A stretch of 64,000 nt of DNA from Tubulanus polymorphus (taxonomy: Eukaryota; Animalia; Nemertea), in assembly GCF_964204645.1 (NCBI RefSeq), contig NC_134033.1:186001-250000 (forward strand), read 5' to 3'. Numbering within the stretch: the first letter of the stretch is position 1; each line of letters opens with the position of its first letter. The notes below the pieces were generated by a model. The model worked only from the letters and a program-made list of their open reading frames with translations, ran no database searches and was not told the DNA's origin. A program made the position numbers and the translations under genes. Shown here piece after piece: positions 15,748-40,180 of this stretch.

Positions 15748-17258
15748 CAGTTCAGTCTCAGTGGAGGAGGATCTACAGCTCAGACTCAGTGGAGGAGGAT
15801 CTACAGCTCAGTCTCAGTGGAGGAGGATCTACAGTTCAGTCTCAGTGGAGGAGGATCTACAGCTCAGTCTCAGTGGAGGAGGATCTACAGCTCAGTCTCA
15901 GTGGAGGAGGATCTACAGTTCAGTCTCAGTGGAGGAGGATCTGCAGCTCAGTCTCAGTGGAGGAGGATCTGCAGCTCAGACTCAGTGGAGGAGGATCTGC
16001 AGCTCAGTCTCAGTGGAGGAGGATCTACAGTTCAGTCTCAGTGGAGGAGGATCTACAGCTCAGTCTCAGTGGAGGAGGATCTGCAGCTCAGTCTCAGTGA
16101 AGGAGGATCTACAGCTCAGTCTCAGTGGAGGAGGATCTACAGTTCAGTCTCAGTGGAGGAGGATCTGCAGCTCAGTCTCAGTGGAGGAGGATCTACAGTT
16201 CAGTCTCAGTGGAGGAGGATCTACAGTTCAGTCTCAGTGGAGGAGGATCTACAGTTCAGTCTCAGTGGAGGAGGATCTACAGCTCAGTCTCAGTGGAGGA
16301 GGATCTACAGCTCAGTCTCAGTGAAGGAGGATCTACAGCTCAGTCTCAGTGGAGGAGGATCTACAGCTCAGTCTCAGTGAAGGAGGATCTACAGCTCAGT
16401 CTCAGTGGAGGAGGATCTACAGCTCAGTCTCAGTGAAGGAGGATCTACAGTTCAGTCTCAGTGAAGGAGGATCTACAGCTCAGACTCAGTGGAGGAGGAT
16501 CTACAGCTCAGTCTCAGTGAAGGAGGATCTACAGCTCAGTCTCAGTGGAGGAGGATCTACAGCTCAGTCTCAGTGAAGGAGGATCTACAGCTCAGTCTCA
16601 GTGGAGGAGGATCTACAGCTCAGTCTCAGTGAAGGAGGATCTACAGTTCAGTCTCAGTGGAGGAGGATCTACAGTTCAGTCTCAGTGGAGGAGGATCTAC
16701 AGCTCAGTCTCAGTGGAGGAGGATCTACAGCTCAGTCTCAGTGGAGGAGGATCTACAGCTCAGACTCAGTGAAGGAGGATCTACAGTTCAGTCTCAGTGG
16801 AGGAGGATCTACAGCTCAGACTCAGTGGACGGAGTCGAGGAGGCTCTCTGTAAACATCTCAATGAATGAAACCTCAGTGGACTGAGGATCTACAGTTCAG
16901 ACTCAGTGGAGGAGGATCTACAGTTCAGTCTCAGTGGATGAGGATCTGCAGCTCAGTCTCAGTGGACGGAGTCGAGGAGGCTCTCTGTAAACATCTCAAT
17001 GAATGAAACCTCAGTGGAGGAGGATCTACAGTTCAGTCTCAGTGGAGGAGGATCTACAGCTCAGTCTCAGTGGAGGAGGATCTACAGTTCAGACTCAGTG
17101 AAGGAGGATCTACAGCTCAGTCTCAGTGGAGGAGGATCTACAGCTCAGTCTCAGTGGACGGAGGATCTACAGTTCAGACTCAGTGAAGGAGGATCTACAG
17201 CTCAGTCTCAGTGGACGGAGTCGAGGAGGCTCTCTGTAAACATCTCAATGAATGAAAT
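15748..17258. repeat. 28-bp minisatellite (cagtctcagtggaggaggatctacagct) with three copies of a ~45-bp interruption at the 3' end
   Basis: Tandem periodicity; gacggagtcgaggaggctctctgtaaacatctcaatgaatgaaa at ~16828, ~16964 and ~17214. Confidence 0.9.
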
Positions 17259-17616
17259 CTGCAACATCTAAACCTGAAATTGAGTGTATTTGTTGCTGAG
17301 TAGACAAACTGCAACCTGGATGTCCCATTATACAATGTAGAATATAATATATCTTTATTGAAAATTCTATAAAACGTTTGCAATGCAAACTATAATTAAT
17401 CATTAGACTATACAACAGGTAAAATGCGCTGTAATATGTTTAAACAATTAGATCCATTTAAACCGTACATACAAAAATATCTGATTCCAGTATAAATTAT
17501 ATCAAAATTTCCTTTAAAAATTATTATGATAATTCTTATTGATATATCATCAAATTTGAGCTTTTTTATCACAGAATTACTTGATAACAATATGTACAAT
17601 GAGATTCTCTCATCAG

Positions 17617-17800
17617 AGAGTACATCAGGGGTAAGTACAGCAGAAAGTACATCAGTGGTAAGTACAGCAGAAAGTACATCAGTGGTAAGTACAGCAGAAA
17701 GTACATCAGGGGTAAGTACAGCAGAGAGTACATCAGTGGTAAGTACAGCAGAAAGTACATCAGTGGTAAGTACAGCAGAAAGTACAGCAGAGGGTACACA
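17617..17800. repeat. 27-bp minisatellite (agtacatcagtggtaagtacagcagaa)
   Basis: About 6 copies. Confidence 0.85.
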
Positions 17801-18156: not shown

Positions 18157-18483
18157 AACTGGATCCGGGAAGTGTAGATTAACTGGATCCAGGAAGTGTA
18201 GATTAACTGGATCCAGGAAGTGTAGATTAACTGGATCCGGGAAGTGTAGATTAACTGGATCCAGGAAGTGTAGATTAACTGGATCCAGGAAGTGTAGATT
18301 AACTGGATCCAGGAAGTGTAGATCAACTGGATCCGGGAAGTGTAGATTAACTGGATCCTGGAAGTGTAGATTAACTGGATCCAGGAAGTGTAGATTAACT
18401 GGATCCAGGAAGTGTAGATCAACTGGATCCGGGAAGTGTAGATTAACTGGATCCAGGAAGTGTAGATTAACTGTATCCGGGAA
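18157..18483. repeat. 24-bp minisatellite (aactggatccaggaagtgtagatt), just downstream of the receptor A stop codon
   Basis: About 13 copies. Confidence 0.9.
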
Positions 18484-18642: not shown

Positions 18643-21600
18643 TCAATGAACTCTTTTTTTCTGCTTCTCGAGTTCTTCTTGTATTCTGCGTCGTTCGGCT
18701 TCTTCTGCCTCCAATCTAGCGATCAGTTCGGCTTGTATTCGCGGTTCAACGACGCGATCGAGTTCCGTGTACGTAGAGAAATCATCGATATCACCGATCA
18801 GTACGCTAGGGGGCGCTTGATGGTGGATGTTATTCACGATGTGTAGATAGGTCGGTTCCTTTGTCTGAAAAAAAAATCATTCCATTTTTCCAACCATTTA
18901 ATTATTTTTCTGATGAAAACGTGCTTAGAAGTAACTTCTAGTTCGCTTGTCACTAGTGGAATCCTCGATTGCCACAGTTGGCAGCTCTCTATTCGAACAC
19001 GATTATTCGGTTTATTAACGGTTAAAACGAGTATATTGACCTCATCTGGATGAAATTCCGGATTATCGACTCCACAGATTCCGTTCCTAACTATATCTTC
19101 ATCTTCATCGTCATCGTTATTTACATCTTGATAAGGATTCTCCTCCTCACCAACTGTTTGATACGGGTTCTCATCTGAAATTATACAACATTTTCTGAAT
19201 TCAACGTGGAATCTATGATGGAACGCTTGCTTGAATTCGCTTAATCTAATCTGGCAATTTGAAAGTTTCGTCAGATCTATAAACTCTTCTATACAATGGG
19301 AACATCGTCGAACTGATTGGATCTTTATTTCATGTGATGGGTTAGACAGGGATTAGCAACTCATAGTTTATTTAGCGGATCCGGGAACGGAGGGAGGAGT
19401 CTCTACTGTAGGAACTACAGCAAAATACTGAGAAAACGAATGAAGGATTTTATCATTTATGTAAAACTCGATGAAGGACTAAGGCATAACAAATAAATGA
19501 AGCACAAGTGCCGACATCAGTTATGGCTTCAGTCACGTGACCGCCGGGAATATTTGAGGAACACATTTTCAATTCCAATTTCAGAACCGGTATTTTAGAT
19601 TAACCGGTATCAGATATTGCACACAGAATAATTTGCGAGATTTCCTCTTTAAATTCGCTATACAGTGTGTTACTCACCCATTCTCTATACAGTGTGTTAC
19701 TCACCCATTCGCTATACAGTGTGTTACTCACCCATTCGCTATACAGTGTGTTACTCACCCATTCTCTATACAGTGTGTTACTCACCCATTCGCTATACAG
19801 TGTGTTACTCACCCATTCTCTATACAGTGTGTTACTCACCCATTCGCTATACAGTGTGTTACTCACCCATTCGCTATACAGTGTGTTACTCACCCATTCG
19901 CTATACAGTGTGTTACTCACCCATTCTCTATACAGTGTGTTACTCACCCATTCGCTATACAGTGTGTTACTCACCCATTCGCTATACAGTGTGTTACTCA
20001 CCCATTCGCTATACAGTGTGTTACTCACCCATTCTCTATACAGTGTGTTACTCACCCATTCGCTATACAGTGTGTTACTCACCCATTCTCTATACAGTGT
20101 GTTACTCACCCATTCTCTATACAGTGTGTTACTCACCCATTCGCTATACAGTGTGTTACTCACCCATTCTCTATACAGTGTGTTACTCACCCATTCGCTA
20201 TACAGTGTGTTACTCACCCATTCTCTATACAGTGTGTTACTCACCCATTCGCTATACAGTGTGTTACTCACCCATTCTCTATACAGTGTGTTACTCACCC
20301 ATTCTCTATACAGTGTGTTACTCACCCATTCTCTATACAGTGTGTTACTCACCCATTCTCTATACAGTGTGTTACTCACCCATTCGCTATACAGTGTGTT
20401 ACTCACCCATTCTCTATACAGTGTGTTACTCACCCATTCGCTATACAGTGTGTTACTCACCCATTCTCTATACAGTGTGTTACTCACCCATTCTCTATAC
20501 AGTGTGTTACTCACCCATTCTCTATACAGTGTGTTACTCACCCATTCTCTATACAGTGTGTTACTCACCCATTCGCTATACAGTGTGTTACTCACCCATT
20601 CTCTATACAGTGTGTTACTCACCCATTCTCTATACAGTGTGTTACTCACCCATTCGCTATACAGTGTGTTACTCACCCATTCGCTATACAGTGTGTTACT
20701 CACCCATTCGCTATACAGTGTGTTACTCACCCATTCGCTATACAGTGTGTTACTCACCCATTCTCTTTACAGTGTGTTACTCACCCATTCGCTATACAGT
20801 GTGTTACTCACCCATTCTCTATACAGTGTGTTACTCACCCATTCGCTATACAGTGTGTTACTCACCCATTCGCTATACAGTGTGTTACTCACCCATTCGC
20901 TATACAGTGTGTTACTCACCCATTCTCTATACAGTGTGTTACTCACCCATTCGCTATACAGTGTGTTACTCACCCATTCGCTATACAGTGTGTTACTCAC
21001 CCATTCGCTATACAGTGTGTTACTCACCCATTCTCTATACAGTGTGTTACTCACCCATTCTCTATACAGTGTGTTACTCACCCATTCGCTATACAGTGTG
21101 TTACTCACCCATTCTCTATACAGTGTGTTACTCACCCATTCGCTATACAGTGTGTTACTCACCCATTCTCTATACAGTGTGTTACTCACCCATTCGCTAT
21201 ACAGTGTGTTACTCACCCATTCGCTATACAGTGTGTTACTCACCCATTCGCTATACAGTGTGTTACTCACCCATTCGCTATACAGTGTGTTACTCACCCA
21301 TTCGCTATACAGTGTGTTACTCACCCATTCTCTATACAGTGTGTTACTCACTCATTCTCTATACAGTGTGTTACTCACTCATTCTCTATACAGTGTGTTA
21401 CTCACCCATTCTCTATACAGTGTGTTACTCACCCATTCTCTATACAGTGTGTTACTCACCCATTCTCTACACAGTGTGTTACTCACCCATTTCGTAGTTC
21501 ATATTCTTCTCTGCTTTTTTCGTCTTTTTGCCTTTTTTGTTTTTATCTACTTGAGCCGCACTATCTACAGACCCTGAAAATACGGCGAATTTCACGTGTC

Positions 21601-24600
21601 ACATTCATACTTTGAGTATTTTGTTTCATGAGGCCAAGTTGAAAGATGCTTCCATAAAATGGATTGAAAACAAGGATATTTTAAAACCAGTTTTTCTTTC
21701 AAATATTAAGTTTCTGAAAACATTTTTAAAATCCCTTTGAATAATTTTTATTTCATGGATTTTTTTTACCTTTCGTTTTCTTCTTTTTGCTTTTATCGAC
21801 GGTAGAGTAAATTGGACCCGTGGCGCCACCTGCACCATTTACAACTGAAATAAACAAACGGTTTGATGACATCGTGAATAATTCCTTTTCAGGAATTGAT
21901 ATTTGAAAGATAGGATAGATAGTCCCTTCCTTATCTAACAAGTAATTTATTATTAAATAAACGAATCATGCTGTTATTCAGTTATTCTAAGCATTTCTTT
22001 GAAATCAATCTATAACTTATAGATAAATCTGCATTGCTTACCTTGATTCCGGGATTTTTTCTTGTTTTTGTCGACCAGGGCGTAGAGTGGCTCTCCTGAA
22101 AATTAATTTATAAATCTATACCGATTGCCTATTTTCAGAGTCTCTGGTTAATCATCGACAATTATGATTGGATTTTTTACATTGAGCCATTAAAAGTTTT
22201 ATCGCTACATTCTCAAAAATTGCCGAGCATCGCCGAACACCTGAACAAAAATATGTGCGAACATGATTTCAATTCGCCGAACGAGACTCGGTAGTTTTCG
22301 GAGGTATCCGGTGATGATCGGTCAGTTAAAAAATCGATAAATAAAGGGCTCCGTTAAATAAAGATGTATAAAAGCCTCACCGGTTTTCTTGACTTCAGAA
22401 ACTGTGAATATAGAAATAAATCTGTTTAAGTTTTTACTGTATTTGTTCATATTCACTTAAAATCACAATATCAATAAAATAATAATAGAACAGTTTAAAC
22501 TATAATGAGTTTAAAAGATCATTCAGAAATAATTCCGCCCTTCATCTGAGTCTAACAATGGAGACTAAAGAAGGATAGTAGTAACCACCCGAAACATTTC
22601 TAATAAAATATTTTGTAATACAAAATGAATTTGTTTTAATAATTAAATGAATTTTCAATGAAATAAGAAAAATGAAAAGCTTTTCTTACCAAGATCGTCA
22701 ATGTTCGAATACGGATCTGAAAAATAACGAAAATACGTTTTATCAACCTTACATTGATAAGAATATTCACAAGTCGTACTCATGAATTGAAAACACTGCG
22801 CGCTGAAGATGTGGATAATTTCTCTCACTTTATAATCAAAAACTGATTCTCAAGACATCATTACACGATACATCGACTGGAGACGGGTGGCTCCGGGATG
22901 CGGATGAATGACCTAATACACTGAGGTTTGATACCGTTATAATATATATTACCAAATTCATTTAAAGCGACGTCCGCAGCAGCAGCAGCAGCAGCAGCAG
23001 CAGCTGTCGGTCTGGTTACAGGTTTTTTGTTCACTGTTGCGTACTCATCACCTAACACAGAAATTAAAAATCAAATATGAATCATTTGAAATCAGACAAG
23101 TTTGAAATTTTATATCTTGTTACAGATAAGTTTGAAAGGCAAGTTTCACCTTTAGGTCCGACTATGTGATTAATATCGATATCGATTTGAGCAGAGGGTG
23201 AACTGTGAAAACAAACCGGAAAAAATACATTTTGTGTTAGAATATGTATTGACATTAGATTACAGTGAACGAATTGAAGAAATATGAACCTTTTCGAGCG
23301 ATATTTGGTCCAGATCCACTGACCGTCTCGACGCCTTTTCACAAATAGCAACACGATGACGATGACGATGATCGCGATCAATGAAATACCGACAATAACA
23401 CCTCCGATCAGTCCGCTGTTGATAGTAGTAGCAAGAACTAGAGAGGATAGAAAAAACAGCGCTGTCACAAATACAAACATCCGATCTGCCTGAATTACAC
23501 CTGACACATCGTAACTGATCTAACACTATAAACATCAGGCATCAATATGAATTCTATTTATTTTTTTATATGCATAATACCCAACACCCCAACTGGATTA
23601 TTTAACCTCACGAAGTGTAGCCCGCACAATGTAAGCAGCCAGCAGGACTCGAACCCACTTGTGTCGCTGATAGTCGACCCAACAGCATCACACTTTTTCT
23701 CACTGTGAGCTACTGAGGCTGCTTCGCTTTATTTGAGGGATAGTTCCAATAAGATGTAACCCGGGAGATTGATGTGGTTGAAGAGATTGAAGAATGTAGC
23801 CGGGTAGTTTTAGCTGGATCGCTAGGGTAAGGGTTAGATGGTTATCCCAGTAACCGGGCGCCGCATATTTGAAAATAAAATTGATTTGTATTTGTAACGT
23901 CGACTGTAAAATGGCGCTAACTCTAACCCTAAACATTTGTTGGTTTATTTGCTACTAAAACCGGCGCTAATATAGGATCAAGTAAACGAAGGATTCGACA
24001 GCCGAATCTGATAATCGATTTTCATTACTTCTTGTTAATTAATTCTAATGATTTATAAGGTGTTCTGTATTAAAAGTCACCGAATATCACAGATATACAT
24101 TTAACAAACCTGTATCTTCTTCTAGTTGAAGCTCGTGACTGACAATGACGTCATCACTCTCAGTAACAATCAGTTTGTAACTATAGTTACGGTCTGGATG
24201 AATATTAATATTTATAATAATCAAACCATCAGTGATTTCTATCAGTTTTGTAGAATTACATTGATTTGTATTTGTGATACAGTATTTCACGTAGACGCTG
24301 TATTTATTTGAAGGAAATGATGATAATTTTATCACGACCAGATTCCCATCTCGATTTATTGTAGCTTGTTTCAATATGGTGTTTATAGCGCTTGGAATAG
24401 CTGGAAAAATGAAAACAATAAAATTAGATTTCGATATTAATTCTTTACGTAACTTCAGTTAAATATACCGTGTTTAACAATAGGCCTAATCGATATATGT
24501 GATATAAAACTTGATGCGAGTTTGAAATCTTACCATTAGTTTTAGTAGTAACTATATCAGTAAATGAACTCGAATTATCAGCAGGATTTAAATTGATACT

Positions 24601-27600
24601 TTTCACTTTGAACTGATAATCAGTCGCTGGTTTTAATGCGGTTATTTTTGTTTGCACCAGTTTTCTATAACCGGGGTCCGGTATTTTAGATTTATTCACG
24701 AATCCTGTAGAATCCGAGCCTCTGTAACTGACGGTGAACGTTTGTTTAAAGCCACCCTCGAATTCAGACACCCAACTCAGTGTCACAGATACAGCTGTTT
24801 TTGCGATAACTGTCAGATTTGACGGTGTTTGTGGAGGTCCTGAAATAGAGATACAGATTAATACACATTTCGCAAATTGCATCAATTTCTATATTTAACC
24901 GTTTAGAGTTAAATAAAAGATTTGTTGTAAAAAAAGACTTAAGTTCGATATTTCTGATTGAAATTGAAACCAAAAGATGAACAACAAACATTAAACCCAA
25001 AATCCTTCCAAAACTGATCATCCAGGTCTCACAGTAAAATCCCCCGTATGAAGAAATAACCCCCCCCCCCCACGGGCGCAGTATATACTCACCAGTCTCT
25101 GTGAGTCTCAGTAATATTTCTAAACTACCGATAGAATTTTTGAGTCGACACGAATAAAATCCATAATCAGACACTTGAACTGATTGTATGATAACATCAA
25201 ACTGAGTTAAACTAGTTTTATTTATTTCATGTTTGTCGTTTGTTGAATTGTGGCTGCAACTTAAACTTGTCTCTGATGGATTCGCGTCAAACTTTATCGT
25301 AAATTTGGCAGTTTCTCCAATATTTGCAGCTACGAATTTCAGCTCGTTTGACAGTTTTGGTGAATCTATTGTAAAATAGAAATATATTTGGTGATGTTGT
25401 AACAAGTGACAAACAGTTGGGCAAATTGTCTGCAACATCAGTACAATTAATAAGATATTTTTGTTTCTAGGAGGCGAGGTCAAATTACACCTGACTGACC
25501 TGTCAATCATCTTAAACAATAAGTACTTACATTGTACATGAACAGTAGCGATATTACTGATTGTAAAACCTGCTGTGTTTGTCGCTTCACATCTGTATCG
25601 TCCTGAATCAGCTTTTGATAGATTTTCTAGGGTAAGATAATCATTCGTGGATCCGATAGTTTTCCAGACAGCCGCTGGTAGAGTTGAGAATTTCCAGGTG
25701 TAAATGTAACTATCAGGGTTTCCACCAGTTGCTGCACAGTTTAACCGTATTGAATTGTTTTCTGTAATTACAGATTTTACTGGAGTCAATGAAACCGAAT
25801 CAGCAGCATCTGGAAAACATAGAATATTGATAATTATTCATATATAATTCTATTGCGTAAATATAAAAATACAACTTTTTTCATTAAAAAAAAATGATTA
25901 TACTATTTATGAATCAGCTCACACACTTACACAGTATTGACAATGTGATGGATTTGCTGACACCAGGTTTACCATTCTGATAAGCGGTACATTTATACTG
26001 TCTTCCATTCTTATCCTTATCAGTTGACACTACTAGACTACTAGTAGATATGTGTCCACTGTGAGGTCCAGGTTTATGATTGGTTGCTGGGTTGGGTGAC
26101 ATATTGGTCCATGTTGTCGCCACAGAGCTGAATGCCCAGACAATCGTAGACACCGGGTTACTGGAGTCAGTTGTACATGTCAGAGTTTTTGATGTACCTT
26201 GAACAACTGAACCGTTTGGAATTTCAGTCAGTGTAATTGACTCTGGTGGAACTGTAAATATGAAATTGAAATTATTCGTTTAATTTCATCAAACGGTCAG
26301 AGAAAAATAAGAAAAGTGTTTCTCACTTACAGTGAATTGTAATTGTTGTATCTTTGCTCAGATTTCCAGTTTCACATCTGTATCGAGCCTGATTCATAGG
26401 TTTAGTTGCAGTAATAGATAATATACTAGTAGCAGAAAACCCGTGATAGACTGCATTAGTTTGACTGGTAGCTGGTTGAGAGATGAGTTGAGTCCATGTT
26501 TTAGAGGAATATGTGAACCAGTGAATCTGTACAGCCGGGTTTGATGAGTCAGTTTTACATTCTATCTGTTGATTATTGTTTACAAACACATGATCTACCG
26601 GACTCTTCATCAGTGTCAGTGCTGCTGCTTGGACTAGAAATAATTCGATATTTTCAATATAATTGTCAAAATCCGGGGAAGTTGATGAAATAAGAATCCA
26701 ATTCACTTGACGCGAATAACGAGTAATTAGTGTGTAACTATGTGTAATACTTACAGTAAACAGTTAATGTAACTTTATTAGAAATCACTGATACTGATAT
26801 ACCAGCTCCAGTGGCTGTACATTGATATTCTGCCTGGTTATCGGTTTTACTGACAGATGTCGAATACATTAGCTGACGACCAACTCCCTGTTTCACAGCG
26901 CTGCCCCCTGGTGTTCTAGTTATAGCGAGGGTCGGTATCGGGTAACCCCCAGTAGCTGTACACGTGAAGACAACAGTCGCGGATTCCTGAACGGGTGACT
27001 CCGGTCCTTGTAATGTAACACCACTCGGCGGGTCTGAAATTAAAATAGTTTGATTAATCGATAATTCATGTATGACAGCAGTAACACATTATTTAGGAAC
27101 ATTTCATAGTTGCAGGAGGGAAAATCCAGAGTCCACCAAATCAATTTTAATTTCTGAATTTTTTAACTTTCATAACACTTTTAGATTTGATAAATAAAAC
27201 TATGTTTAATTGAGTAAAGAGTAAAATAAATACTCACATGTAACATTGATAGTAATACTATCAGCAACTGATCCCACAGTATTCGATACGTTACATGTAT
27301 AAACACCTGAATCAGTTCTCCTAACGGGCTGGAATCTGAGTTTATTACCAGACTGTCCTGATGGATTGACACCAGTCCATTTATACTTCAGTCCTGTAGC
27401 TCCAGACTGTGAACCGTCACACGTGACTGTTAACTGTGAATTCTCCTGTACTGTAACGATGTTGTTGATGACGGGGGCTGGTTGAGATGTTAGAACTGGT
27501 CCACTAGGGGGCGCTGTAAATATGAAATGATGCAGATTTGATTTTAACAATAATGAAAACAAATCATCAACAGACATCACAGTTTATGTATCAATGCGCA

Positions 27601-29635
27601 CTAATGGCGCGGATGAATATACTATGAGTAAAGTGTTATACGTTTCATTTTCTCAAACTGGATAAAACTTTCATATGTAAAATTTATTCGTGAAATCTTC
27701 AATCAATATCAACACTCAATGAATATCTCAGAACAACTGGTGAATACGAGATTTTTTATTGCTCAACACAATTAGAAATTTTATATATCATTGAATAGTT
27801 TATCATTCTCACCTAAAACAGTAACTACTGTTTTACTGTTTGGGAAAGAGTTCATGTAGTTACATGACCATCGTCCAGCATCAGTCATCTGTATATTTTC
27901 TATACGTAAACCGTAACGTCCATTTGTGACGTCACATTGTCCAGTGTATCGGGGATCACTGATAGTTCCACTTGGACAGTTTGACTTATCAAACGCATAC
28001 TCTCCTGGAGGACCACCGATTGTCATTCTAAAGTCGCAGAAATTTTTACTGGCTGGTGAAACCTGACATTGTACATCAGTGGTGCCACCTACTATTACAA
28101 TTGATCGTGTTGCAACCACAGTGAGTCTCGTATCCACTGGGTCTATACAGTTCGTCTGCTGTCCTGAAAACAATATGTTTAAACTGTTTTGGGAGAAATT
28201 GTAAGGTTCAATACTTAACCTTAATTAAATGCTAATATGTTCCATTATAACAATACTCAGGAAATGGGGATTACAATTAAATTTTTCAAATTTATAAATG
28301 TTACTTCAGTAATGTCATAACTAGAATGAGGCTAAGCCTCGGCTTTTAATTCACCGCCACATGTACAGTTTGTGGCGGAGTCACATGTGCAGAAGGATGT
28401 TATTAGACAACATGTAGTGTAAAAAAAATATACCAACAGTTACAGACTGTGATTCCCTACTTCAGTCCAAAGTTTAAAATATTGGTCAAAAATTGCGGCC
28501 TCTTGACTGTTAACGACGTTTTTCATGTGAACCGCATCGCCTCAATTTTTGATAAAATCGGTCGCTAGTGTGTTAACGATGTTTTTCATGTCGGTCTCCT
28601 GGTGGCCATAATTTGAATCAAATCGACCTAATTTTGATTTGGGTTTCGCCCAAGTGATGCCCTAGTCATATACTAAGTTTGAAAAGAATTGGTCGACAAT
28701 TGCGGCCTCTCTAGACTGTTAACGTCACTTGCGGTTTATAATAGAAATTTAGATATAAAACACATTTAATTAAAACTACTTGTAAAAGTGTTCTTCAAAA
28801 AGAAAAGTTTTAAGATGAGATTTAAAATCGTAAATGTCATTGCAGTTCCAAACCTTAGGAGGTAGATTATTCCATAAAATTGGTGCGTAAACTACTCTGT
28901 GCTCTGTGCATTAAGTATTAATTGTGGAGCAATTAACTGAAACTGAAACTGATCATTGCTAAATATTATGATGTTCTACCCGGACACTTTCAGCCGTTTT
29001 TTTACCTGTTGTGTATTTGGATGTGAGTAGAACTATCACGAACACGAACCACACTTCACTCTGAATATAGAACATAATTACAAAATTATCGAGTTTGTTA
29101 TTCACAAATTAATCAATTCGGCGTTAAATTAGTCCGTGAATCTGGGTGCAGAAACTTGAAATGATTCTGTTTCCTTTACTTTGATCTACTCGTCGTAGGA
29201 ATTCATTATATATAGCGACTTGTGTGAATCTGAACCCCAGAAACTATTGACAACAGTTCTCTTATGTTAGATATGTTGTATCTAGGGCCAATGGCTAAGT
29301 TTTTAATTTATCCAGACAACTTATTGAATTTCGACCCCGTTCTTGAGCTATGTCGTCATTTTTATGTCACTGAGCAATATAGTTTTAGTTCTAACGCTAG
29401 GTGGCGCACCGGGCTCATTCTTTGCACTGCACAACCCCAATACTGACTTGTTACCGGACGGATGGACGGACGGACGGACGGACGGACGGACGGACAGAGA
29501 CAGACAGAGACAGACAGAGACAGACAGAGACAGACAGAGACAGACAGAGACAGACAGAGACAGACAGAGACAGACAGAGACAGACAGAGACAGACAGAGA
29601 CAGACAGAGACAGACAGAGACAGACAGAGACAGAC

Positions 29636-29676
<41 letters not shown>

Positions 29677-29975
29677 TACAGACACAGACACAGACAGACA
29701 GACAGACAGACAGATAGGTAGGCAGGCAGGCAGGCAGGCAGACAGGCAGACAGACAGACAGACAGACAGACAGGTAGGCAGGCAGACAGGCAGGCAGACA
29801 GACACACAGACAGACGGACAGACAGACAAACAGACAGACAAACAGACAGGCAGGCGGGCGGGCAGGCAGGCAGACAGACAGGCAGACAGACAGACAGACA
29901 GACAGACAGCCAGACAGACAGACAGAGACAGACAGACAGAGACAGACAGAGACAGAGACAGAGACAGAGACAGAC

Positions 29976-30042
<67 letters not shown>

Positions 30043-30164
30043 GACAGACAGACAGACAGACTATCTATGTATCAGAACAAAGAGATTTCTACAGTTTTGC
30101 GATGGTTGTGCAGTTGTTAAGGACGATTTTACTTTACTACTATACTCACAGTTTGACCGTTCAT
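18643..30164 (-). CDS. IgSF type-I receptor A (signal peptide, IgV + 6 Ig, FN3, membrane-proximal domain, TM, ~270-aa multi-tyrosine tail); nephrin/sidestep/CD22-like architecture
   Basis: Leader exons 30164-30150 (MNGQT) and 29060-29006 (SEVWFVFVIVLLTSKYTTG). One Ig domain per phase-1 exon from 28163-27813 (DAGRWSC) to ~25364-25093 (DYGFYSC); FN3 exon ~24839-24534 (PPQTPSNL..LSW..LKPATDYQFKV); TM exon 23437-23290 (GLIGGVIVGISLIAIIVIVIVLLFV-KRRR); short tail exons; stop at 18643. Confidence 0.85.
19654..21491. repeat. 27-bp satellite, ~68 copies, each containing the splice donor of a receptor A tail exon
   Basis: Unit ttc(g/t)ctatacagtgtgttactcaccca; on the minus strand AATGG|GTGAGTAACACACTGTATAG. 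Two variants are interspersed. Confidence 0.95.
23630..23722 (-). mobile_element. Degenerate tRNA-derived (SINE-like) head
   Basis: Minus strand GCAGCC..TAGCTCA..GGGTTCGAGTCC..GGCTGC has A/B-box remnants and paired ends but no proper anticodon arm. Confidence 0.45.
28320..28725. mobile_element. Probable non-autonomous interspersed element (Helentron/HINE-like) with internal subrepeats
   Basis: Repeated aattgcggcctct..gactgttaacg blocks (~28491 and ~28698); similarity to invertebrate HINE-type repeats is from recall only. Confidence 0.35.
28785..28900 (-). mobile_element. 3' remnant of a CR1/L2-type LINE ORF2
   Basis: Minus-strand translation YAPILWNNLPPKVWNCNDIYDFKSHLKTFLF fits the AP.LWN.LP...FK..LKT.LF terminus of L2/CR1 ORF2. 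Confidence 0.6.
29455..30062. repeat. Compound (GGAC)n/(GACA)n/(GGCA)n microsatellite in intron 1 of receptor A
   Basis: Direct inspection. Confidence 0.95.
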
Positions 30165-30360
30165 TTTCACCAAATTTTCTCGTGATCAAAATATATCGAT
30201 TGAACATTAAAAGTTGAGTCATTCACTTCATCGGAATTTCAAAACTCTGTTTTCGAAGTTATGGCAAAACTCTTCAATCTAAGCCTAAAACGTAGCATCA
30301 AGAGCACATCTACGTAATCCATATTAAGATATGCTAAGACGTTTTTCACTACCTGGTCGC

Positions 30361-31113
30361 TTTATATATAGCTGACTACATTTTTGTCAACACACACAAT
30401 ATCGGTCTAACCTACGACGCGTTGTATTCATATATTCGACAGTAGTACAAGCGGTACAGGGTACTGCTTTCACAGTACAGTGCTGTTGACGACATTCGTC
30501 TGATTTGCGATATAGTAATGTACACGACGTTTAGATATCTTTACTGTTATTATATTCCTATATTTGTTCAAAGTGCGGGAAAAACCCGCGCAGTAGGTTT
30601 TATTTTTCGCCATTCTAAATCATGACTGATTAATTTCAATAATAGGATCGTGTCCATATGGAAACCATCCTCAGCTGGGAGAGTCTCAATATCATCAAGA
30701 TCGAATTCCGGGCAGGATGCTACAGACGGTGAATCTTAGTAGCAGAAAACCTGTGATGTATGTAGTTCAAATTACTTTTAAAAGATTTCACTGATACAAA
30801 TGTCTGATGTAATTAGTTCATTTTCGATAAAAAAAATCCTGAGGATTTGGCTTTCTACATCAACGTCATAATTTCACATATCTATGATGATGTGCAAAAA
30901 GTGACGTCAATTATCAATAATTTCAGTTATTTATTCAAAGTTCAATTCTTAATCCATCAATCGTCATGATTAAACTGTTTGAGATATTTGAGGAATAGTC
31001 ATATCAATTGATTGATACATGTACATTAGACTCCGCGCGCTTCTGTCACAGAGTCCATGTCTATACTACAAATAGCTTTAAACTACCACGCAATACATTG
31101 TTCACTTATAAAA
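30361..31113. promoter_or_regulatory. Putative divergent promoter region of receptors A and B
   Basis: Outward-facing TATA-like boxes: TATATAAA (minus, 30368-30361) and TATAAAA (plus, 31107-31113), each 200-300 bp upstream of the inferred ATG; GGGAAAAACCC at 30577-30587. Confidence 0.4.
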
Positions 31114-31409
31114 TACTTCCTGGTTGGAATAGAAAGACGTTTTTTTCAATGTTCATGTGACAGAAAATCAGAGCGTTCCATTCATTACTGTTGATTTGTG
31201 TTTTGTAAGTTAGGTTTCAATCTTAGAACCAAGGAATTTTGAATCTTAGAAAAGTAAAGCTAAGAAGGAACTACGGCTAAAATATCTAGTTAATACTCAG
31301 ATTTGGAAAACTGCCTAATTGTGAAGGAGCAATAATACATGATAGCATATTTGAATACTTCTTTTAGTGAAGAAATTTTGTGGTTCTTTGAGAAGGAATT
31401 ATATACAGA

Positions 31410-34400
31410 ATGTGCAGAAAGGTAAAGATCAGAGTTACAGATCAAATCTGTACGGGTTTAATTAGATTCTGAATACAGTTTCCATCCTGACCCCGGAACA
31501 GTCACATCTGGAGCAGCAGAAATATTTAACTTCACGCGGATTGAGCTAAATCAAAATATTTATTGTCTTCATTACAGAAATTTCTGGTCGTAATTCTGAT
31601 GTTATGTCTGATTATGTGCACAGGAATAAACGGTAAATTAATATCGATCTAACGAGCGATAGAAATGACGAGTCTTGTGTTTTAGAATTTCTATTGAATT
31701 ATAAATTATGATTTATCATTGTGTGTGCAAGTTTGAATTTTTATCCCCTGATCTATGAATACAAGGAATTTGATCCACGAATTTGATCCACCTATGGCGT
31801 CACTGTTTAACTTAAGTCAGCTCACATCTTTAACTTACTTAATTTTACTACGCATTTGATGATGTCATTCGGTGAATGGAAATTTGAGTTATTTTATAAA
31901 CGAGGTGTAAAACGTCTGACCATGAATTAACTTCCATTTCTGCAGCGGTGCTTCGTGATCTCGTTTTTTTATGATTTCGTTTTAACATATCTACTTGTAA
32001 ATTGTTTTCAGGACAGCAGACGAACTGTATAGACCCAGTGGATACGAGACTCACTGTGGTTGCAACACGATCAATTGTAATAGTAGGTGGCACCACTGAT
32101 GTACAATGTCAGGTTTCACCAGCCAGTAAAAATTTCTGCGGCTATAGAATAACACTGAGCGGCCCTCCAGGAGAGTATGCGTTTGATAAGTCAAACTGTC
32201 CTCGTGGAACTATCAGTGATCCCCGGTACACAGCACAATGTGACGTCACAGCTGGTCGTTACGGTTTACGTATAGAAAATATACAGATGACTGATGCTGG
32301 ACGATGGTCATGTAACTACATGAACTCTTTCCCAAACAGTAAAACAGTAGTAACTGTATTAGGTGAGAATGATAAACTATTCAATGATATATAAAATTTC
32401 TAATTGTGTTGAGCAATAAAAAATCTCGTATTCACCAGTTGTTCTGAGATATTCATTGAGTGTTGATATTGATTGAAGATTTCACGAATAAATTTTACAT
32501 ATGAAAGTTTTATCCAGTTTGAGAAAATGAAACGTATAACACTTTACTCATAGTATATTCATCCGCGCCATTAGTGCGCATTGATACATAAACTGTGATG
32601 TCTGTTGATGATTTGTTTTCATTATTGTTAAAATCAAATCTGCATCATTTCATATTTACAGCGCCCCCTAGTGGACCAGTTCTAATATCTCAACCAGCCC
32701 CCGTCATCAACAACATCGTTACAGTACAGGAGAATTCACAGTTAACAGTCACGTGTGACGGTTCACAGTCAGGAGCTACAGGACTGACGTATAAATGGAC
32801 TGGTGTCAATCCATCAGGACAGTCTCATAATAAACTCAGATTCCAGCCCGTCAGTAGAACCGATTCAGGTGTTTATACATGTAACGTATCGAATACTGTG
32901 GGATCAGTTACTGATAGTATTACTATCAATGTTACATGTGAGTATTTATTTTACTCTTCACTTTATTAAACATAGTTTTATTTATCAAATCTAAAAGTGT
33001 TATGAAAGTTAAAAAATTCAGAAATTAAAATTGATTTGGTGGACTCTGGATTTTCCCTCCTGCAACTATGAAATGTTCCTAAATAATGTGTTACTGCTGT
33101 CATACATGAATTATCGATTAATCAAACTATTTTAATTTCAGACCCGCCGAGTGGTGTTACATTACAAGGACCGGAGTCACCCGTTCAGGAATCCGCGACT
33201 GTTGGCTTCACGTGTACAGCTACTGGGGGTTACCCGATACCGACCCTCGCTATAACTAGAACACCAGGGGGCAGCGCTGTGAAACAGGGAGTTGGTCCTC
33301 AGATATCGTATTCAACATCTGTCAGTAAAACCGATAACCAGGCAGAATATCAATGTACAGCCACTGGAGCTGGTATATCAGTATCAGTGATTTCTAATAA
33401 AGTTACATTAACTGTTTACTGTAAGTATTACACATAGTTACACACTAATTACTCGTTATTCGCGTCAAGTGAATTGGATTCTTATTTCATCAACTTCCCT
33501 GAATTTTGACAATTATATTGAAATATCGATTTGTTTTCAGTCAAAGCCACAGCACTGACACTGATGAAGAGTCCGGTAGATTATGTGTTAGTAAACAATA
33601 ATCAACAGATAGAATGTAAAACTGACTCATCAAACCCGACTGTACAGATTCACTGGTTCATATATTCCTCTAAAACATGGACTCAACTCGTCTCTCAACC
33701 AGCTACCAGTGAAACTAGTGCAGCCTATCACGGGTTTTCTGCTACTAGTATATTATCTATTACTGCAACTAAACCTATGAATCAGGCTCGATACAGATGT
33801 CAAACTGGAAATCTGAGCAAAGATACAACAATTACAGTTTACTGTAAGTGAGAAACGCATTTCTTATTTTTCTATAACCGTTTCATGAAATTACAATTAA
33901 CTAATTGCAATTTGATATTTTACAGTTCCACCAGAGTCAATTACACTGACTGAAATTCCAAACGGTTCAGTTGTTCAAGGTACATCAAAAACTCTCACAT
34001 GTACAACTGACTCCAGTAACCCGGTGTCTACGATTGTCTGGGCGTCGTACAGCTCTGTGGCGACAACATGGACCAATATTACACCCAACCCAGCAACCAA
34101 TCATATCCCTGGATCTCACAGTGGACAGATATCTACTAGTAGTCTAGTAGTATCTACTGATAAGGATAAAAATGGTAGACAGTATAAATGTACCGCTTAT
34201 CAGAATGGTAAACCTGGTGTCAGCAAATCCATCACATTGTCAATACTGTGTAAGTGTGAGCTGATTAAACAAGAACAACAAATTTATTCTTTTTTAGAAA
34301 AAGAAGTTATTCGCGTGTTAGAATTATCAATATTCTATGTTTTCCAGATGCTGCTGATTCGGTTTCATTGACTCCAGTAAAATCTGTAATTACAGAAAAC

Positions 34401-37373
34401 AATTCAATACGATTAAACTGTGCAGCAACTGGTGGAAACCCTGATAGTTACATTTACACGTGGAAATTCTCAACTCTACCAGCGGCTGTCTGGAAAACTA
34501 TCGGATCCACGAATGATTATCTTACCCTAGAAAATCTATCAAAAGCTGATTCGGGACGATACAGATGTGAAGCGACAAACACAGCAGGTTTTACAATCAG
34601 TAATATCGCAACTGTTGATGTACAATGTAAGTTACATATATACATATTGTTTAAAATGATTGACAGGTCAGTCAGGTGTCATTTGAGCCCGCCTCCTAGA
34701 AACAAAACTATCTTATTAATTGTACCGATTTTCCAGACAATTTTCCAAATTGTTTGTCACTTGTTAAAACATCACCAAATATATTTCTATTTTACAATAG
34801 ATTCACCAAAACTGTCAAACGAGCTGAAATTCGTAGCTGCAAATATTGGAGAAACTGCTAAATTAACGATAAAGTTTGACGCGAATCCATCAGAGACAAG
34901 TTTAAGTTGCAGCCACAATTCAACAAACGACAAACATGAAATAAATAAAACTAGTTTAACTCAGTTTGATTTTATCATACAATCAGTTCAAGTGTCTGAT
35001 TATGGATTTTATTCGTGTCGACTCAAAAATTCTATCGGGAGTTTAGAAATATTACTGAGACTCACAGAGACTGGTGAGTATGAACTGCGCCCCGGGGGGG
35101 GGGGGGGGTTATTATTCAAATGGGGAATTTTACTGTGAGACCTGGATGATCATTTTTGGAAGGGTTTGGATATAAAACATCTAACATCTGGTGTTTATCG
35201 TTCGTCTTTTGGTTTCAATTTCAATCGAAAATGTAGAAAATTAAGATATTAGGTTCAAAACAGGTGACGATGATTTAGAGGTGGCTGGAAATTTCGAATA
35301 TTTCGGGTCTAGGTCTCAAGTTGATAGGAACTAAAGTCTTTTTCACAATAAATCTTTTATTTAACTCTAAACGGTTAAATAAAGAAATCAACGCAATTTG
35401 CGAAATGTGTATTAAACTGTATCTCTATTTCAGGACCTCCACAAACACCGTCTAATCTGACAGTTATCGCAAAAACAGCTGCATCTGTGACACTGAGTTG
35501 GGTGTCTGAATTCGAGGGTGGCTTTAAACAAACGTTCACCGTCAGTTACAGAGGCTCGGATTCTACAGGATTCGTGAATAAATCTAAAATACCGGACCCC
35601 GGTTATAGAAAACTGGTGCAAACAAAAATAACCGCATTAAAACCAGCGACTGATTATCAGTTCAAAGTGAAAAGTATCAATTTAAATCCTGCTGATAATA
35701 CGAGTTCATTTACTGATATAGTTACAACTAAAACTAATGGTAAGATTTCAAACTCGCATCAAGTTTTATATCACATATATAGATTAGATTAGGCATATTC
35801 TTAAACACGGTATATCTAACTGAAATTACGTAAAGAATTAATCAGTTTGTTCCCGTCACTGGAGACTGTTAATTTCACTGACAACCAATGTCGATATTTT
35901 CAATCCAAGCTTCTGCACCGATACGAATTAGAGAATAATTTAAGGAATTATGTAGATAATGCAGTATTAGAATTGTTAAATTCAAATTATGACTGAATTT
36001 TTTTTCTCAATGTTTCAGCTATTCCAAGTGTTATAAACTTCATATTGAAACAAGCTACAATAAAACGAGATGGAAATCTGATCGTGATAAAATTATCATC
36101 ATTTCCTTCAAATAAATACAGCGTCTACGTGAAATACTGTATCACAAATACAAATCAATGTAATTCTACAAAACTGATAGAAATCACTGATGGTTTGATT
36201 ATTATAAATATTAATATTCATCCAGACCGTAACTATAGTTACAAACTGATTGTTACTGAGAGTGATGACGTCATCGTCAGTCACGAGCTTCAACTAGAAG
36301 AAGGAACAGGTTTGTTAAATGTATATCTGTGATATTCAGTGGCTTTTAATACGGAACGCCTTATAAATTCATACCGTTAATTAAGGGTAGTTGACAATTT
36401 AGAGAAATGCTGAAAAACGACTGTCAGATGCCTGCAGTTATTATGTTTCTAAAACTCATGTTTTCAGGAGATGACACGTGGACCGTCGCGTCTCTAGTTC
36501 CACTCATTATTGTTGGTGTTGTTTTTGGTGTCATCGCGTTTGTTCTGGTATTAATTTTATTGATCGTACTTTTGATAAAACAACTCAGAAATGAAGGTTG
36601 CACTTTTATCAACAAATCAAAAAGAAGGTGAGTTTTATAGTAGTTACCCGCACAACTAAATCATTTATCTTATTATCTACAAATATTTGAAACTACTTTA
36701 TATGCAAAAAAAATTTGTAATTAAAAGGTAAATGATACATTGAAATCATTCTTTAATTTTAGAAAAACTGGAGAAGAATCAACTGTTGGTAAATTGTAAC
36801 TTAAAGCAGAAATAGAATTCATGAGAAAATGAACTGTTATTGATAATAGAATTACAGAGCTTCTGAATATTTTATCGAGTTTCTAAATAAACTGAACGTT
36901 CTAAGAAAACAGTATCCATGTATTTAGGATAATTATTGATTATATCATTATTTCATTCATTTCAGTTTATTCAAACAGTAATGAGGTCAATGACACAGAT
37001 TCGCGTATGTATCATTTCAATGCGTGTTATACCTTCAAATATCTCTCTGCAAAATGAGTCTATTTGAAAAAGCGAATTGATATTTCAGATTCTTACGCCG
37101 CGGCGACGCCTTATGTAAATGTAGCTTTTAGCGGTAAGTTAAATTATCATTAAAACTCATCTTATGACAACATTCTAAACAAACAAGAGACATCTTCACC
37201 AAAAGGTTCAGACATCAGCGGGTTTTTATTTCAACTATTCCCTACCTAAGTTCCATGCGGCCGCTCCGCCCGTCCGGGAGAGTTATCATTCTTATTATCA
37301 CGCGTTCTTTGTTTTTCTTCATTAAACAGAGGCTGGAAATGATCCGAACCCTTATGAAGAAGTCAAACATTAG
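31410..37373 (+). CDS. IgSF type-I receptor B, paralogue of A with near-identical ectodomain and a different leader, TM and short (~67-aa) tail
   Basis: Leader exons 31410-31421 (MCRK, GTAAAG donor) and 31578-31632 (KFLVVILMLCLIMCTGING). IgV exon 32012-32362, six more Ig exons, FN3 ~35434-35740, membrane-proximal exon ~36019-36309, TM exon 36468-36627 (LVPLIIVGVVFGVIAFVLVLILLIVLLI-KQLR). Tail exons KTGEESTV / VYSNSNEVNDTDS / HSYAAATPYVNVAFS / EAGNDPNPYEEVKH, TAG at 37371-37373. Confidence 0.85.
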
Positions 37374-39099
37374 CGAAAATACTGAAACCTGTCTCAATGA
37401 CATGTACCCGGTACATGTACATAACACGATGTGCTTGATTCACCGACAACCGGACGTTCTACACTGGACGTGGATTCACAGTTCCCTACGGCAAAACAAC
37501 AGCTGAACTGACTACAGAATTTATCATTGAACTACGATATTAAATAAACACGCTGAACTATAGACCTGTAACTGAATGAGGAACTTGTTGTATGTAAAAT
37601 CCTGCGAATTGATGCCTATTCTTTTTATAAATTTTTAGCGAAATCCGTTTGTTTTATTTTTACCTGCTAACTAATTAGTAATAGTTATATTTAACGACGA
37701 TGTATTAATGATAATCTGTAAGACACGCAAGAGTAGAGATAATTTGATAATCAGTTTAAACTGCTATTAGCTGCTGTTATAAAAATGTAATGTGATATTT
37801 TATTCCTATTTACGACTTTTTTACAAATCTAATAAATAAACAGCGCTTAATATAAAATAATATTGTGAATAAATGTAAGGATGTAAGATTAATGACTGCG
37901 ACAGTTGTTTCAACAGAATATAAACCACACTAGAAAAACTGAATAGATTAAACTTGAATTAGAATTTAGAGAAAGATGAATCAAGTTAGTATTTGGATAT
38001 TACACTAACTAATTAAGGAGTGAACATTGAATTCAAGTTTTAAAATGTTCATGTTAAATCATCATCGTATAACTACCGTAAATTCCGTTTAAATTTCAAG
38101 CTTAAAATTCTGCAAGTTAGGTTTAAATAGTTTGAACACTTATCATTGAAAACTCGACAAGAACGATTTTTCGAAGACAAAAAAATTGCTGAAAGTCGGG
38201 TTGACGGAGTTTTGAGAGTAGACCTGGATATAGGAGACTCGCAGACGAGACGGAAGTATTGTGATTTATGCCGAATAGCTATTGTCGGCCATCCTTGATT
38301 TCGATCGGGCCATGAGCTGCAGACGAGGAGTCCTAGTTTTCTCGGAGGAGTCCTAGTTTTCTCGGAGGAGTCCTAGTTTTCTCCACTCAGAGGAGGGGAT
38401 GCAGACTATCAAAGAACAGACTACACTATACACCAGCGACACCTGGTGTTTCCTCACAGTGTGTAGAATCCCCAGTTCACTCTGTACGCACACTAGCGAC
38501 ACCTGGTGGATCCCGATCACTTCACACAAATTCAAACATTCAAAAATAAACGGCCGAAATAAAGAAATAGTCTTCTCGACAGACAGACGATTTTATTGCA
38601 CATTTAAAGACGAACTTTTTTCACATAAAAATTAAACCATGTTTCAATGATATACAGATCAACCGAGCGATTTAAACACAGACTACACGTATCATATCAC
38701 TATTCAAAACTAACCGTCACTTATTCGGCCTTGACATTGCTTGACGTTAGTACACGTGACCTCGATGAATAGATATAACCCGGAAGTTGATAGTAAGATG
38801 GTAACTAGGAAACCACGCAGGGATTTAGTTTGGGGAGGCGACGCCATTTTGTTTTTTCGAGTTGTTTTAAATACATTGATTATTCAACAATCGGAATCAC
38901 AATGAATTGAATTATCATTCTTATTATCGATACGTGATAATAATTAATTAATTGATATAATTTATCGGCAGATCATCCAGCTACATGACAGGAACTGATC
39001 AGTTTTATAGTAACGACTTACAGAGTGTGGACCCCACTTTAAACATTCGGGTGTTTACACGTCTTTTACCCGAACTCATCACCAAATGAATAAATAAAC

Positions 39100-39572: not shown

Positions 39573-40026
39573 CTAAGGACCGGCTTCAGCGCGGTGGCGC
39601 TGTTCAGCCAGGGTACGGCGGATCAGCGAATCAGCGAGCTCGTCCATCTCTCTACGGCTGAACTCGCTTGCCAGACGTTCGGCGAGTTGACGCCTGCGCA
39701 GAAGATCATCTCCCAATTCATCGAGGGTTCGTCTGGTGGCGTCTCCGCCTCGTTTTAACAGCGAGCGACCGATTGGGTCGAGCATGCGTTTCTTCAACAG
39801 ACTGCTGCCGATTCGATCCAGGGACCTCTTGTCCATAGCGTGTTCCTCATCCCGTTTTATCAAACTGCTTCCGATACGGTCCAACATCCTCTTACGTAAT
39901 AAACTCGAGCCAACTCGGTCGAGCATTCTCTTGTCGCCAGATGGCGCGTCGATCTCACGCTTCCGGAACATGCTACTTCCGATCTTGTCCAACATTCGTT
40001 TCTCTTGACTTTCTGAGGCGACGACG
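39573..40026 (-). CDS. Neuropeptide precursor, pedal-peptide/orcokinin family (MLD-type), main peptide-coding exon; signal-peptide exon not located
   Basis: tttgcAG acceptor at 40028-40027. Repeated decapeptides flanked by basic cleavage sites: MLDKIGSSMF, MLDRVGSSLL, MLDRIGSSLI, SLDRIGSSLL, MLDPIGRSLL, TLDELGDDLL, EMDELADSLI. No C-terminal Gly, so not amidated. Family assignment is from recalled similarity. Confidence 0.85.
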
Positions 40027-40180
40027 CTGCAAAGATAAACAAAAATACTATTTTTATTGATACAGTCTTAAACATTGTTTCACAGTTCTGGATCTAGTTC
40101 CACATATTTAGATCCAGTTCCACATGGATCTAGTTCCACAATTACTGGATTAAGTTCCACAGTTCCAAATTTGTGACTAC

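Follow-up and report, generated by a model that had tools for sequence, protein, structure and literature searches.

The 64,000-nt window analyzed here (C9:186001-250000 of the 268-Mb assembly of the ribbon worm Tubulanus polymorphus; coordinates are positions in this window unless another sequence is named) contains two divergently transcribed receptor genes, A on the minus strand and B on the plus strand, which share a 4.1-kb inverted repeat that is ~95% identical, introns included. The repeat holds the ectodomain exons, while the exons for the signal peptides, transmembrane (TM) helices, and cytoplasmic tails lie outside it. Judged from comparison with their paralogs elsewhere in the genome, the arms undergo concerted evolution confined to the ectodomain, or "merohomogenization," the term of Fossum et al. 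for vertebrate paired leukocyte receptors (PMC3210942). We consider it probable that A/B is one copy of an ancient two-gene receptor unit, in which the ectodomain arms have been homogenized and the leaders and tails have evolved separately.

A repeat finder resolved the two arms into eight collinear pieces, 93–99% complementary and 3826 nt apart, and BLASTN aligned A from 28174 to 24035 (-) with B from 32001 to 36384 (+) at 94–95% identity. The left arm (24035..28174, -) carries A exons 3–11 (28163-27813, 27513-27238, 27033-26755, 26633-26331, 26251-25931, 25809-25531, 25365-25093, 24839-24534, and 24400-24110), and the right arm (32001..36384, +) carries the nine ectodomain exons of B (32012-32362, 32662-32937, 33142-33420, 33541-33843, 33926-34249, 34348-34626, 34801-35073, 35434-35739, and 36019-36309). 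Both arms are also supported by RefSeq mapping, and the right arm additionally by RNA-like joints. All nine shared exons are phase 1-1 and open, with their AG/GT sites kept in both arms. In both genes, homology begins 11 nt 5' of the acceptor of the exon encoding the first immunoglobulin domain (Ig1) and stops 75 nt past the last shared exon. Between the arms lies a unique 3.8-kb spacer (28175..32000) that contains the 5' ends of both genes; because the two ATGs are separated by only 1246 nt, it likely holds a bidirectional promoter region common to A and B.

Mosaic divergence and recurrence of the A/B unit

The initial annotation described the two ectodomains as shared almost base for base. 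The near-identity of the arms, introns included, stands, but the match is not uniform: exons differ by 3.1% (ectodomain exons being 94.9–98.7% identical at the nucleotide level) and introns by 8.0% plus 295 gap columns; the arms show 198 substitutions in all, and their indels reach 132 bp. An identity scan along the arms brought out this mosaic. Divergence by block ranges from 0 to 19%, with no difference in the 299 bp of the Ig1–Ig2 intron and 12–19% in later introns, and the longest identical run reaches 327 bp, against 110 bp at the 99.9th percentile after the differences were shuffled. Such blockwise divergence is not what one duplication event would leave, whereas repeated short conversion tracts do account for it. 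An island of divergence within Ig1 (32141..32256, +; A counterpart 27919-28034) has 16 differences in 116 bp (14%) with identical sequence on both sides, and it sits in the V-type segment between the extra cysteines, the most variable part across the family. Synonymous divergence in Ig1 is 0.105 versus 0.006 in the adjoining introns (p = 1e-5), and the 3' half of the arms shows the opposite pattern, with 0.044 at synonymous sites versus 0.122 in introns (p = 5e-4). Overall, the ratio of non-synonymous to synonymous divergence (dN/dS) between the arms is 0.49, and both partners are thus under constraint. For Ig4, 13 non-synonymous differences against one synonymous difference between A and B did not amount to significant positive selection (p = 0.14).

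The same arrangement recurs on C3. The C-terminal exon of A has ten paralogs, all on the minus strand, at C3:22.80-23.11 Mb, and paralogs of the B TM and tail exons lie on the plus strand, interleaved with the A-type exons, at C3:22.80-23.21 Mb. Mapped over 200 kb of this cluster, the exon series fall into head-to-head A(-)/B(+) pairs, and a genome-wide census of Ig1 exons recovered divergent (-,+) pairs separated by 3.6–4.0 kb at C9 as well as at four sites on C3, together with two looser pairs. Two of the C3 pairs, P1 and P2, are inverted repeats of ~11 kb that are 90–93% identical including introns; P3 and P4 are known from exon coordinates alone. Conservation also extends into the spacer, where islands comprising A exon 2, an element upstream of B (31101-31198), and B exons 1 and 2 are retained in collinear order in the spacers of the C3 pairs. 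Among the RefSeq proteins, there are two leader types and two tail types, and these always occur A with A and B with B. Taken together, the recurrent pairs, the collinear spacer, and the fixed leader–tail combinations indicate that the A/B unit is old and was copied as a unit.

The extent of the matched segment differs among the pairs. In the window, P1, and P2 alike, its inner boundary precedes the Ig1 acceptor by 11–16 nt, while the outer one varies, lying directly past the last ectodomain exon in the window and beyond the TM exon in P1/P2; both details agree with a conversion process limited by homology. At C3:22921564-22934146, the repeat accordingly includes the TM exon, and the B-tail protein P0011 therefore carries an A-type TM together with the juxtamembrane GQWIWTK that follows the A TM and is kept in A-type paralogs. 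In the tail region of P0011, the YSN / YAxxT..VN exon pair is also present three times in tandem, and the YVNV tyrosine is lost from two of these copies. In a further pair, g2/g3, matching is left only in the N-terminal exons for Ig1 and Ig2 (95% and 92.6% identity within the pair); only its Ig1 is nearer to the partner than to every other gene, and its FN3 shows no pairing. Family members also occur outside the pairs: a second array at C3:24888982-24932841 has ~8 Ig1 exons, all on the plus strand and hence without head-to-head partners, and C12:1.33-1.46 Mb has six B-like TM exons without a B tail.

Phylogenetic comparison separates the history of the ectodomains from that of the tails. Window A and window B are 95–99% identical in Ig1, Ig2, FN3, and the second FN3, and only 70–88% identical to any C3 gene. 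In the Ig1+Ig2 tree, window A groups with window B, g2m_A with g3p_B, and the four P1/P2 genes with one another, each with 99–100% support; forcing the A-tail genes to be monophyletic costs 291 log-likelihood units (approximately unbiased test, p = 3e-34). The tails, by contrast, follow type: A-type tails are clear homologs across loci (72–81% amino acid identity), and B-type tails keep their motifs. Synonymous divergence (dS) between the ectodomains of a pair is 0.05–0.06 in the window (dN/dS 0.42), 0.12–0.16 in P1 and P2 (dN/dS 0.41–0.65), and 0.19 in g2/g3 (dN/dS 0.38), and rises to 0.32–0.42 between loci (dN/dS 0.44–0.49). Between loci, the C-terminal exon of the A tail has a dS of 0.47–0.65 (dN/dS 0.22–0.26) and the TM exons of the A and B types one of 0.47–0.74 (0.74 for the B TM; dN/dS 0.27–0.38). 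The ectodomain thus evolves faster than the tails, at a dN/dS of 0.42–0.49, and up to ~1 in recent copies, versus 0.22–0.27.

The grouping of ectodomains by pair, set against leaders and tails that group by type and with higher dS, argues for concerted evolution of the ectodomain only. Moreover, as the A and B leader–tail combinations occur at other loci with a tail dS of 0.5–0.7, the pair must be far older than the similarity of its arms. The initial proposal of an old duplicate pair with a homogenized ectodomain and distinct leader, TM, and tail is borne out by the by-pair clades, the tree test, and the older tails, the comparison of ectodomain and tail phylogenies having been run across paralogous loci of the same genome.

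Gene models, transcripts, and protein architecture

Both genes, which had been recognized from sequence as intact and divergent, are RefSeq genes that match the window at 100%, every junction being GT-AG, and their exons, joined in a local script to verify translation, yield the RefSeq proteins exactly. Gene A (18643..30164, -) has 21 coding exons ending in a stop at 18643 and encodes XP_074658381.1 (P0013; 1222 aa), automatically named "synaptogenesis protein syg-2-like." Its coding exon 1 (30150..30164, -) encodes MNGQT and is followed by the donor gtgagt; the 55-nt exon 2 (29006..29060, -) encodes an A-type signal peptide homologous to the A-type leaders on C3 (compare P0003 and P0002); and the 148-nt TM exon (23290..23437, -), of phase 1-2, encodes a helix without a charged residue. 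The tail is encoded by exons 13–21 (23202-23150, 23051-22953, 22716-22690, 22401-22381, 22095-22042, 21844-21770, 21573-21487, 19174-19041, and 18864-18643, all -). Two introns of this gene contain tandem repeats: a (GACA)n microsatellite of ~159 copies (29465-30061) lies in intron 1, within the spacer, and a minisatellite with a 27-nt unit (68 copies, 97% matches; 19653-21491) occupies most of intron 19 between tail exons, where it presents several open frames that are outside the RefSeq protein.

Gene B (31411..37373, +) has 16 coding exons with a stop at 37373 and encodes XP_074657813.1 (P0040; 1020 aa) and XP_074657814.1 (P0015; 1009 aa), automatically named "nephrin-like." Exon 1 (31411-31422, +) encodes MCRK, the 55-nt exon 2 (31578..31632, +) a B-type signal peptide homologous to the B-type leaders on C3, and the 160-nt TM exon (36468..36627, +), again of phase 1-2, a helix without a charged residue; the tail exons (36763..37373, +) are 36763-36788 (26 nt), 36966-37004, 37089-37133, and 37330-37373. 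RefSeq mapping thereby reproduced the leaders, the 55-nt second leader exons, and the phase 1-2 TM exons of the initial annotation. A phase-1 donor after the TM helix was considered for both genes and ruled out by RNA joints and RefSeq, which give a phase 1-2 exon followed by a short phase 2-1 exon. Both products are predicted to be type-I membrane proteins.

For transcript evidence, four public runs were compared with 31400-37399, of which run X2 behaves as RNA and run X1 is DNA-like. Contigs from X2 contain GT..AG joints at no fewer than 10 predicted junctions of gene B: six between ectodomain exons, and all five that connect the last ectodomain exon, by way of the TM exon and three further exons, to the final exon, from 37330. 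The leader-to-Ig1, Ig1–Ig2, and Ig5–Ig6 joints of B are not among the X2 joints listed. Because the joints run through its TM and tail exons, gene B is expressed, and its tail is spliced as modeled. Spliced RNA thus supports the model of B, while the corresponding signal for A is ambiguous: spliced X2 contigs bear A-type letters at sites diagnostic between A and B, which suggests that A is transcribed but could alternatively come from a B allele carried by the animal sampled. Contigs from X1 at 32867-33499 and 36312-36590 bear A-type letters at some diagnostic sites and B-type letters at others, and one such mixed contig runs on into the unique TM exon of B; these contigs suggest haplotypes with other conversion mosaics.

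Pfam searches with the shared exons detected seven Ig domains and one fn3, and the ectodomain as a whole begins with a V-type Ig, followed by six more Ig domains, one FN3, and then a second, cryptic FN3. The structure model of Ig1 is a V-type Ig (predicted local distance difference test score, pLDDT, 84) whose closest structural matches are antibody V domains, and its six invariant cysteines make up three disulfide-capable pairs. The membrane-proximal exon has no Pfam match; its model is an FN3-like sandwich (pLDDT 84–92) that aligns to solved FN3 domains with Z 9.6–9.8 and a root-mean-square deviation of 2.1–2.5 Å, and the region is thus modeled as the second FN3.

The tails conform in length and motifs to what had been read from the sequence. 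The cytoplasmic part of A comprises 273 aa with 10 tyrosines and a charged C-terminal helix, and its tyrosine motifs are YATV, YSNI, YALV, YSTV, YEMD, two copies of NPYQxV, YLHI, and STYTEL. The last of these fits the strict consensus of an ITIM (immunoreceptor tyrosine-based inhibitory motif) and is represented by STYSEL in most paralogs. In exon 19 of window A (21487-21573), a tail module has lost its tyrosine (SVDSAAQVDKNKK), where the C3 paralogs have SVDSAEPLYAQVDKNKK. The cytoplasmic part of B comprises 67 aa with YSNS, YAAA, TPYVNV, and NPYEEV, and the last three blocks are kept in B-type paralogs. TPYVNV fits the consensus of an immunoreceptor tyrosine-based switch motif and equally well the Grb2-type SH2 motif, pYxN, and the YEEV of B is similar to the Src-family SH2 motif, pYEEI. 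The TM exons of A and B have no significant similarity to each other (E = 12), in agreement with the dissimilar helices first described, and, as had been foreseen, activation of the DAP12 type is excluded because neither TM is charged.

Origin of the matching and competing explanations

On the reading we favor, the spacer from which A and B diverge contains the promoters of both genes along with the signal-peptide exon specific to each type. The comparisons show that the inverted arms, with their ectodomain exons and introns, are repeatedly homogenized by short-tract intrachromosomal gene conversion, and that the separate evolution of leaders and tails began before copies of the unit reached other loci. 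Conversion would be limited by homology, stopping just outside the outermost conserved exons and thus being unable to enter leaders or tails. Both receptors may then recognize an identical or almost identical ligand while being coupled to different SH2 partners; going by known SH2 specificities, A, with its ITIM and repeated Y[AS]xV, could act as the inhibitory or scaffold arm, and B, with its pYxN of the Grb2 type and pYEEV of the Src-family type, as the activating arm. Opposite signaling, a shared ligand, and a role in immunity or allorecognition, all raised by the initial annotation, are put forward only as hypotheses.

Several points weigh against this reading. Conversion between close inverted repeats is mechanical, and matching need not mean selection. 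The strict ITIM consensus is found at one of the 10 tyrosines of A, and B lacks both a charged TM and an ITAM (immunoreceptor tyrosine-based activation motif), so the sequence does not by itself reveal a split into inhibitory and activating partners. P1 and P2, as recent tandem duplicates, count as one event, which leaves three independent within-pair groupings. The tail exons of A are supported by the RefSeq model and paralog conservation, the read comparison having covered gene B; and relatives outside Tubulanus were not found in the databases searched. Selection could account for the matching of A and B, but so could the mechanics of the palindrome. That the two are true opposing receptors for a fast-evolving ligand, acting in nemertean immunity or self/non-self recognition, is possible but doubtful. 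If they were, paired receptors with ectodomain-restricted conversion would have arisen independently in a protostome, and the unconverted hypervariable Ig1 island would mark where the arms are kept different.

The alternative that survives best, though we judge it unlikely, is that only the mechanics of a palindrome are at work: A and B would be ordinary adhesion or neuronal members of the immunoglobulin superfamily (IgSF), similar to nephrin and SYG-2, with a shared bidirectional promoter, conversion as a neutral by-product that carries no significance for matching of ligands, and no opposing signaling. The automatic RefSeq names agree with this, and they derive from the best non-Tubulanus matches, which are nephrins at 23–25% identity; in the full-length search, Tubulanus matches of at least 42% identity are followed by arthropod nephrins (25%). 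The succession of many Ig, FN3, TM, and a tyrosine-rich tail is also nephrin-like, both tails have tyrosine motifs but no ITAM or charged TM, and the conversion boundaries coincide with the end of homology, as expected of a passive process. However, the Ig-chain, FN3, and TM architecture common to A/B and nephrin / SYG-2 is a shared build only: along with one TM and a tyrosine-containing tail, A and B have it in common with nephrin, SYG-2, and Sticks-and-stones, from which they differ in the N-terminal V-type Ig with three cysteine pairs, the cryptic second FN3, and the unrelated tails. As candidates for the nephrin / SYG-2 ortholog itself, A and B were rejected, since an arthropod nephrin (P0019) matches a collinear exon series at C6:7461048-7468110, with none on C9 or C3 among the matches; by this criterion, the true nephrin ortholog of the genome is a separate gene at C6:7.461-7.468 Mb.

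Further features sit poorly with a purely mechanical origin. The genes of the family are numerous and lie in clusters, and among the data searched they occur only in Tubulanus; the ectodomains change more quickly than the tails, as is typically seen in recognition receptors whose ligands change fast; and the g2/g3 pair is matched just at Ig1–Ig2, which looks like selective retention at the likely binding end. In these respects, A/B look like members of a recognition-receptor family. A profile of the A-tail C-terminus, run against 1.84 billion representatives, recovered only four Tubulanus proteins and a single repetitive ENA sequence, and an exon-length search for relatives outside the species returned only one RefSeq fragment.

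The remaining alternatives fare much worse. A single recent inverted segmental duplication that placed an ectodomain cassette beside an unrelated leader and tail by exon shuffling, with no ongoing conversion, could explain the sharp repeat boundaries beside exons and would read the ~5% overall divergence as one young event; we regard it as very unlikely, as A leaders with A tails and B leaders with B tails exist at other loci with a tail dS of 0.5–0.7, a blockwise divergence of 0–19% is unlike a single age, and the tree has three separate pair clades. A flip-flop switch, in which arm-to-arm recombination would invert the spacer and the two tails would thereby exchange promoters, leaders, and N-terminal domains, is permitted by the geometry of inverted arms flanking both 5' ends. 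It is still less credible, for leader and tail are of the same type in every gene readable at its ends (P0013, P0040, P0003/9, P0002, P0011, P0016, P0017, and P0018), the leader exons in the P1, P2, g2/g3, and g5/g6 spacers are type-consistent as well, and the germline assembly contains no copy in flipped form. We give almost no credence to an assembly artifact, with the second arm a mis-joined haplotype or fold-back chimera: inverted near-duplicates can be assembly errors, and X1 gave no contig spanning a whole arm, yet both arms run on both sides into unique sequence with intact paralog-conserved exons, they differ by the many substitutions and indels described above, the layout recurs at a minimum of four other loci, and spliced RNA-like contigs link the arm of B to its own TM and tail.

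Comparison with known systems and neighboring features

In vertebrates, homogenization of ectodomains is read as keeping opposing receptors tuned to one fast-changing ligand. The A/B pair has two of the hallmarks by which paired receptors are known, namely close linkage with highly similar ectodomains (Ig1 exons 3.8 kb apart) and different TM and cytoplasmic regions. Our literature searches yielded no description of the A/B receptor family and no ectodomain-restricted homogenization of receptor pairs in an invertebrate, the phenomenon being documented there only in vertebrate immune gene families. The head-to-head unit, the type-specific leaders and tails, the arms homogenized at three places, and the faster ectodomain together suggest convergence with vertebrate paired receptors; the same genomic logic in a ribbon worm suggests that this solution is general and convergent, not peculiar to vertebrates. 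To our knowledge, no receptor system has been described in nemertean immune or recognition biology, and A/B offers a testable entry into it. The C3 copies further provide a natural experiment, in which conversion carried an A-type TM exon into a B-tail gene. Even if the matching were only the mechanical effect of a palindrome on adhesion genes, the locus would be a clean case of homology-limited conversion that gives rise to chimeric similarity within genes. Large palindromes such as the ampliconic ones of the human Y chromosome likewise have arms around a unique spacer that are kept alike by intrachromosomal conversion; unlike those arms, which carry whole identical genes, the arms of A/B end inside genes, whose products share only their middle part.

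The closest parallel is SIGLEC11/SIGLEC16, already named in the initial annotation and an apt one: these genes are head-to-head, ~9 kb apart, with ~3 kb converted (PMC5701461). As in A/B, two head-to-head IgSF genes lie a few kb apart, an N-terminal ectodomain block is converted together with its introns, and the TM and cytoplasmic parts differ (PMC5701461). In A/B, unlike in SIGLEC11/16, the two genes have their entire ectodomain in common (nine exons, 4.1 kb), both partners have tails with tyrosine motifs, there is no charged TM for an adaptor such as DAP12, and the unit is present in several copies. The ectodomain of seven Ig and two FN3 domains is also unrelated to that of the Siglecs, and sialic-acid binding is not implied. 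The phylogenetic pattern resembles that of KLRC, KLRI, KLRB, Ly49, PIR, and CEACAM1/3, whose trees cluster the binding domains according to genome or locus and the tails according to type (PMC3210942; PMC5112662). Those vertebrate receptors have known ligands and proven opposite signals, whereas A and B are nemertean, known from sequence, and tested across the paralogous loci of one genome. Among invertebrates, the Botryllus Fester/FcoR pairs and Hydractinia Alr genes are similarly clustered, fast-evolving IgSF pairs with ITIM-like or other tyrosine motifs, and copy-number variation at these loci takes in whole pairs (PMC12582321; bioRxiv 10.1101/2022.03.04.482883). In contrast to A/B, the Botryllus pair consists of a receptor and a different co-receptor, and palindromic homogenization of ectodomains is not reported there (PMC12582321).

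Tandem repeats are unusually dense around the gene pair. Besides those within gene A, minisatellites lie on both sides of the pair at 15748-17220, 17614-17790, 18157-18483, and 40943-41646, with periods of 28, 27, 24, and 33 nt. Downstream of gene B, an open reading frame (ORF) at 39576-40067 (-) encodes 164 aa with at least six short-peptide repeats (MLDxIGSSLL-like), each between dibasic KR/KK sites, and looks like a putative neuropeptide or prohormone precursor. Another ORF, at 10325-10636 (-), contains an EF-hand-like stretch.

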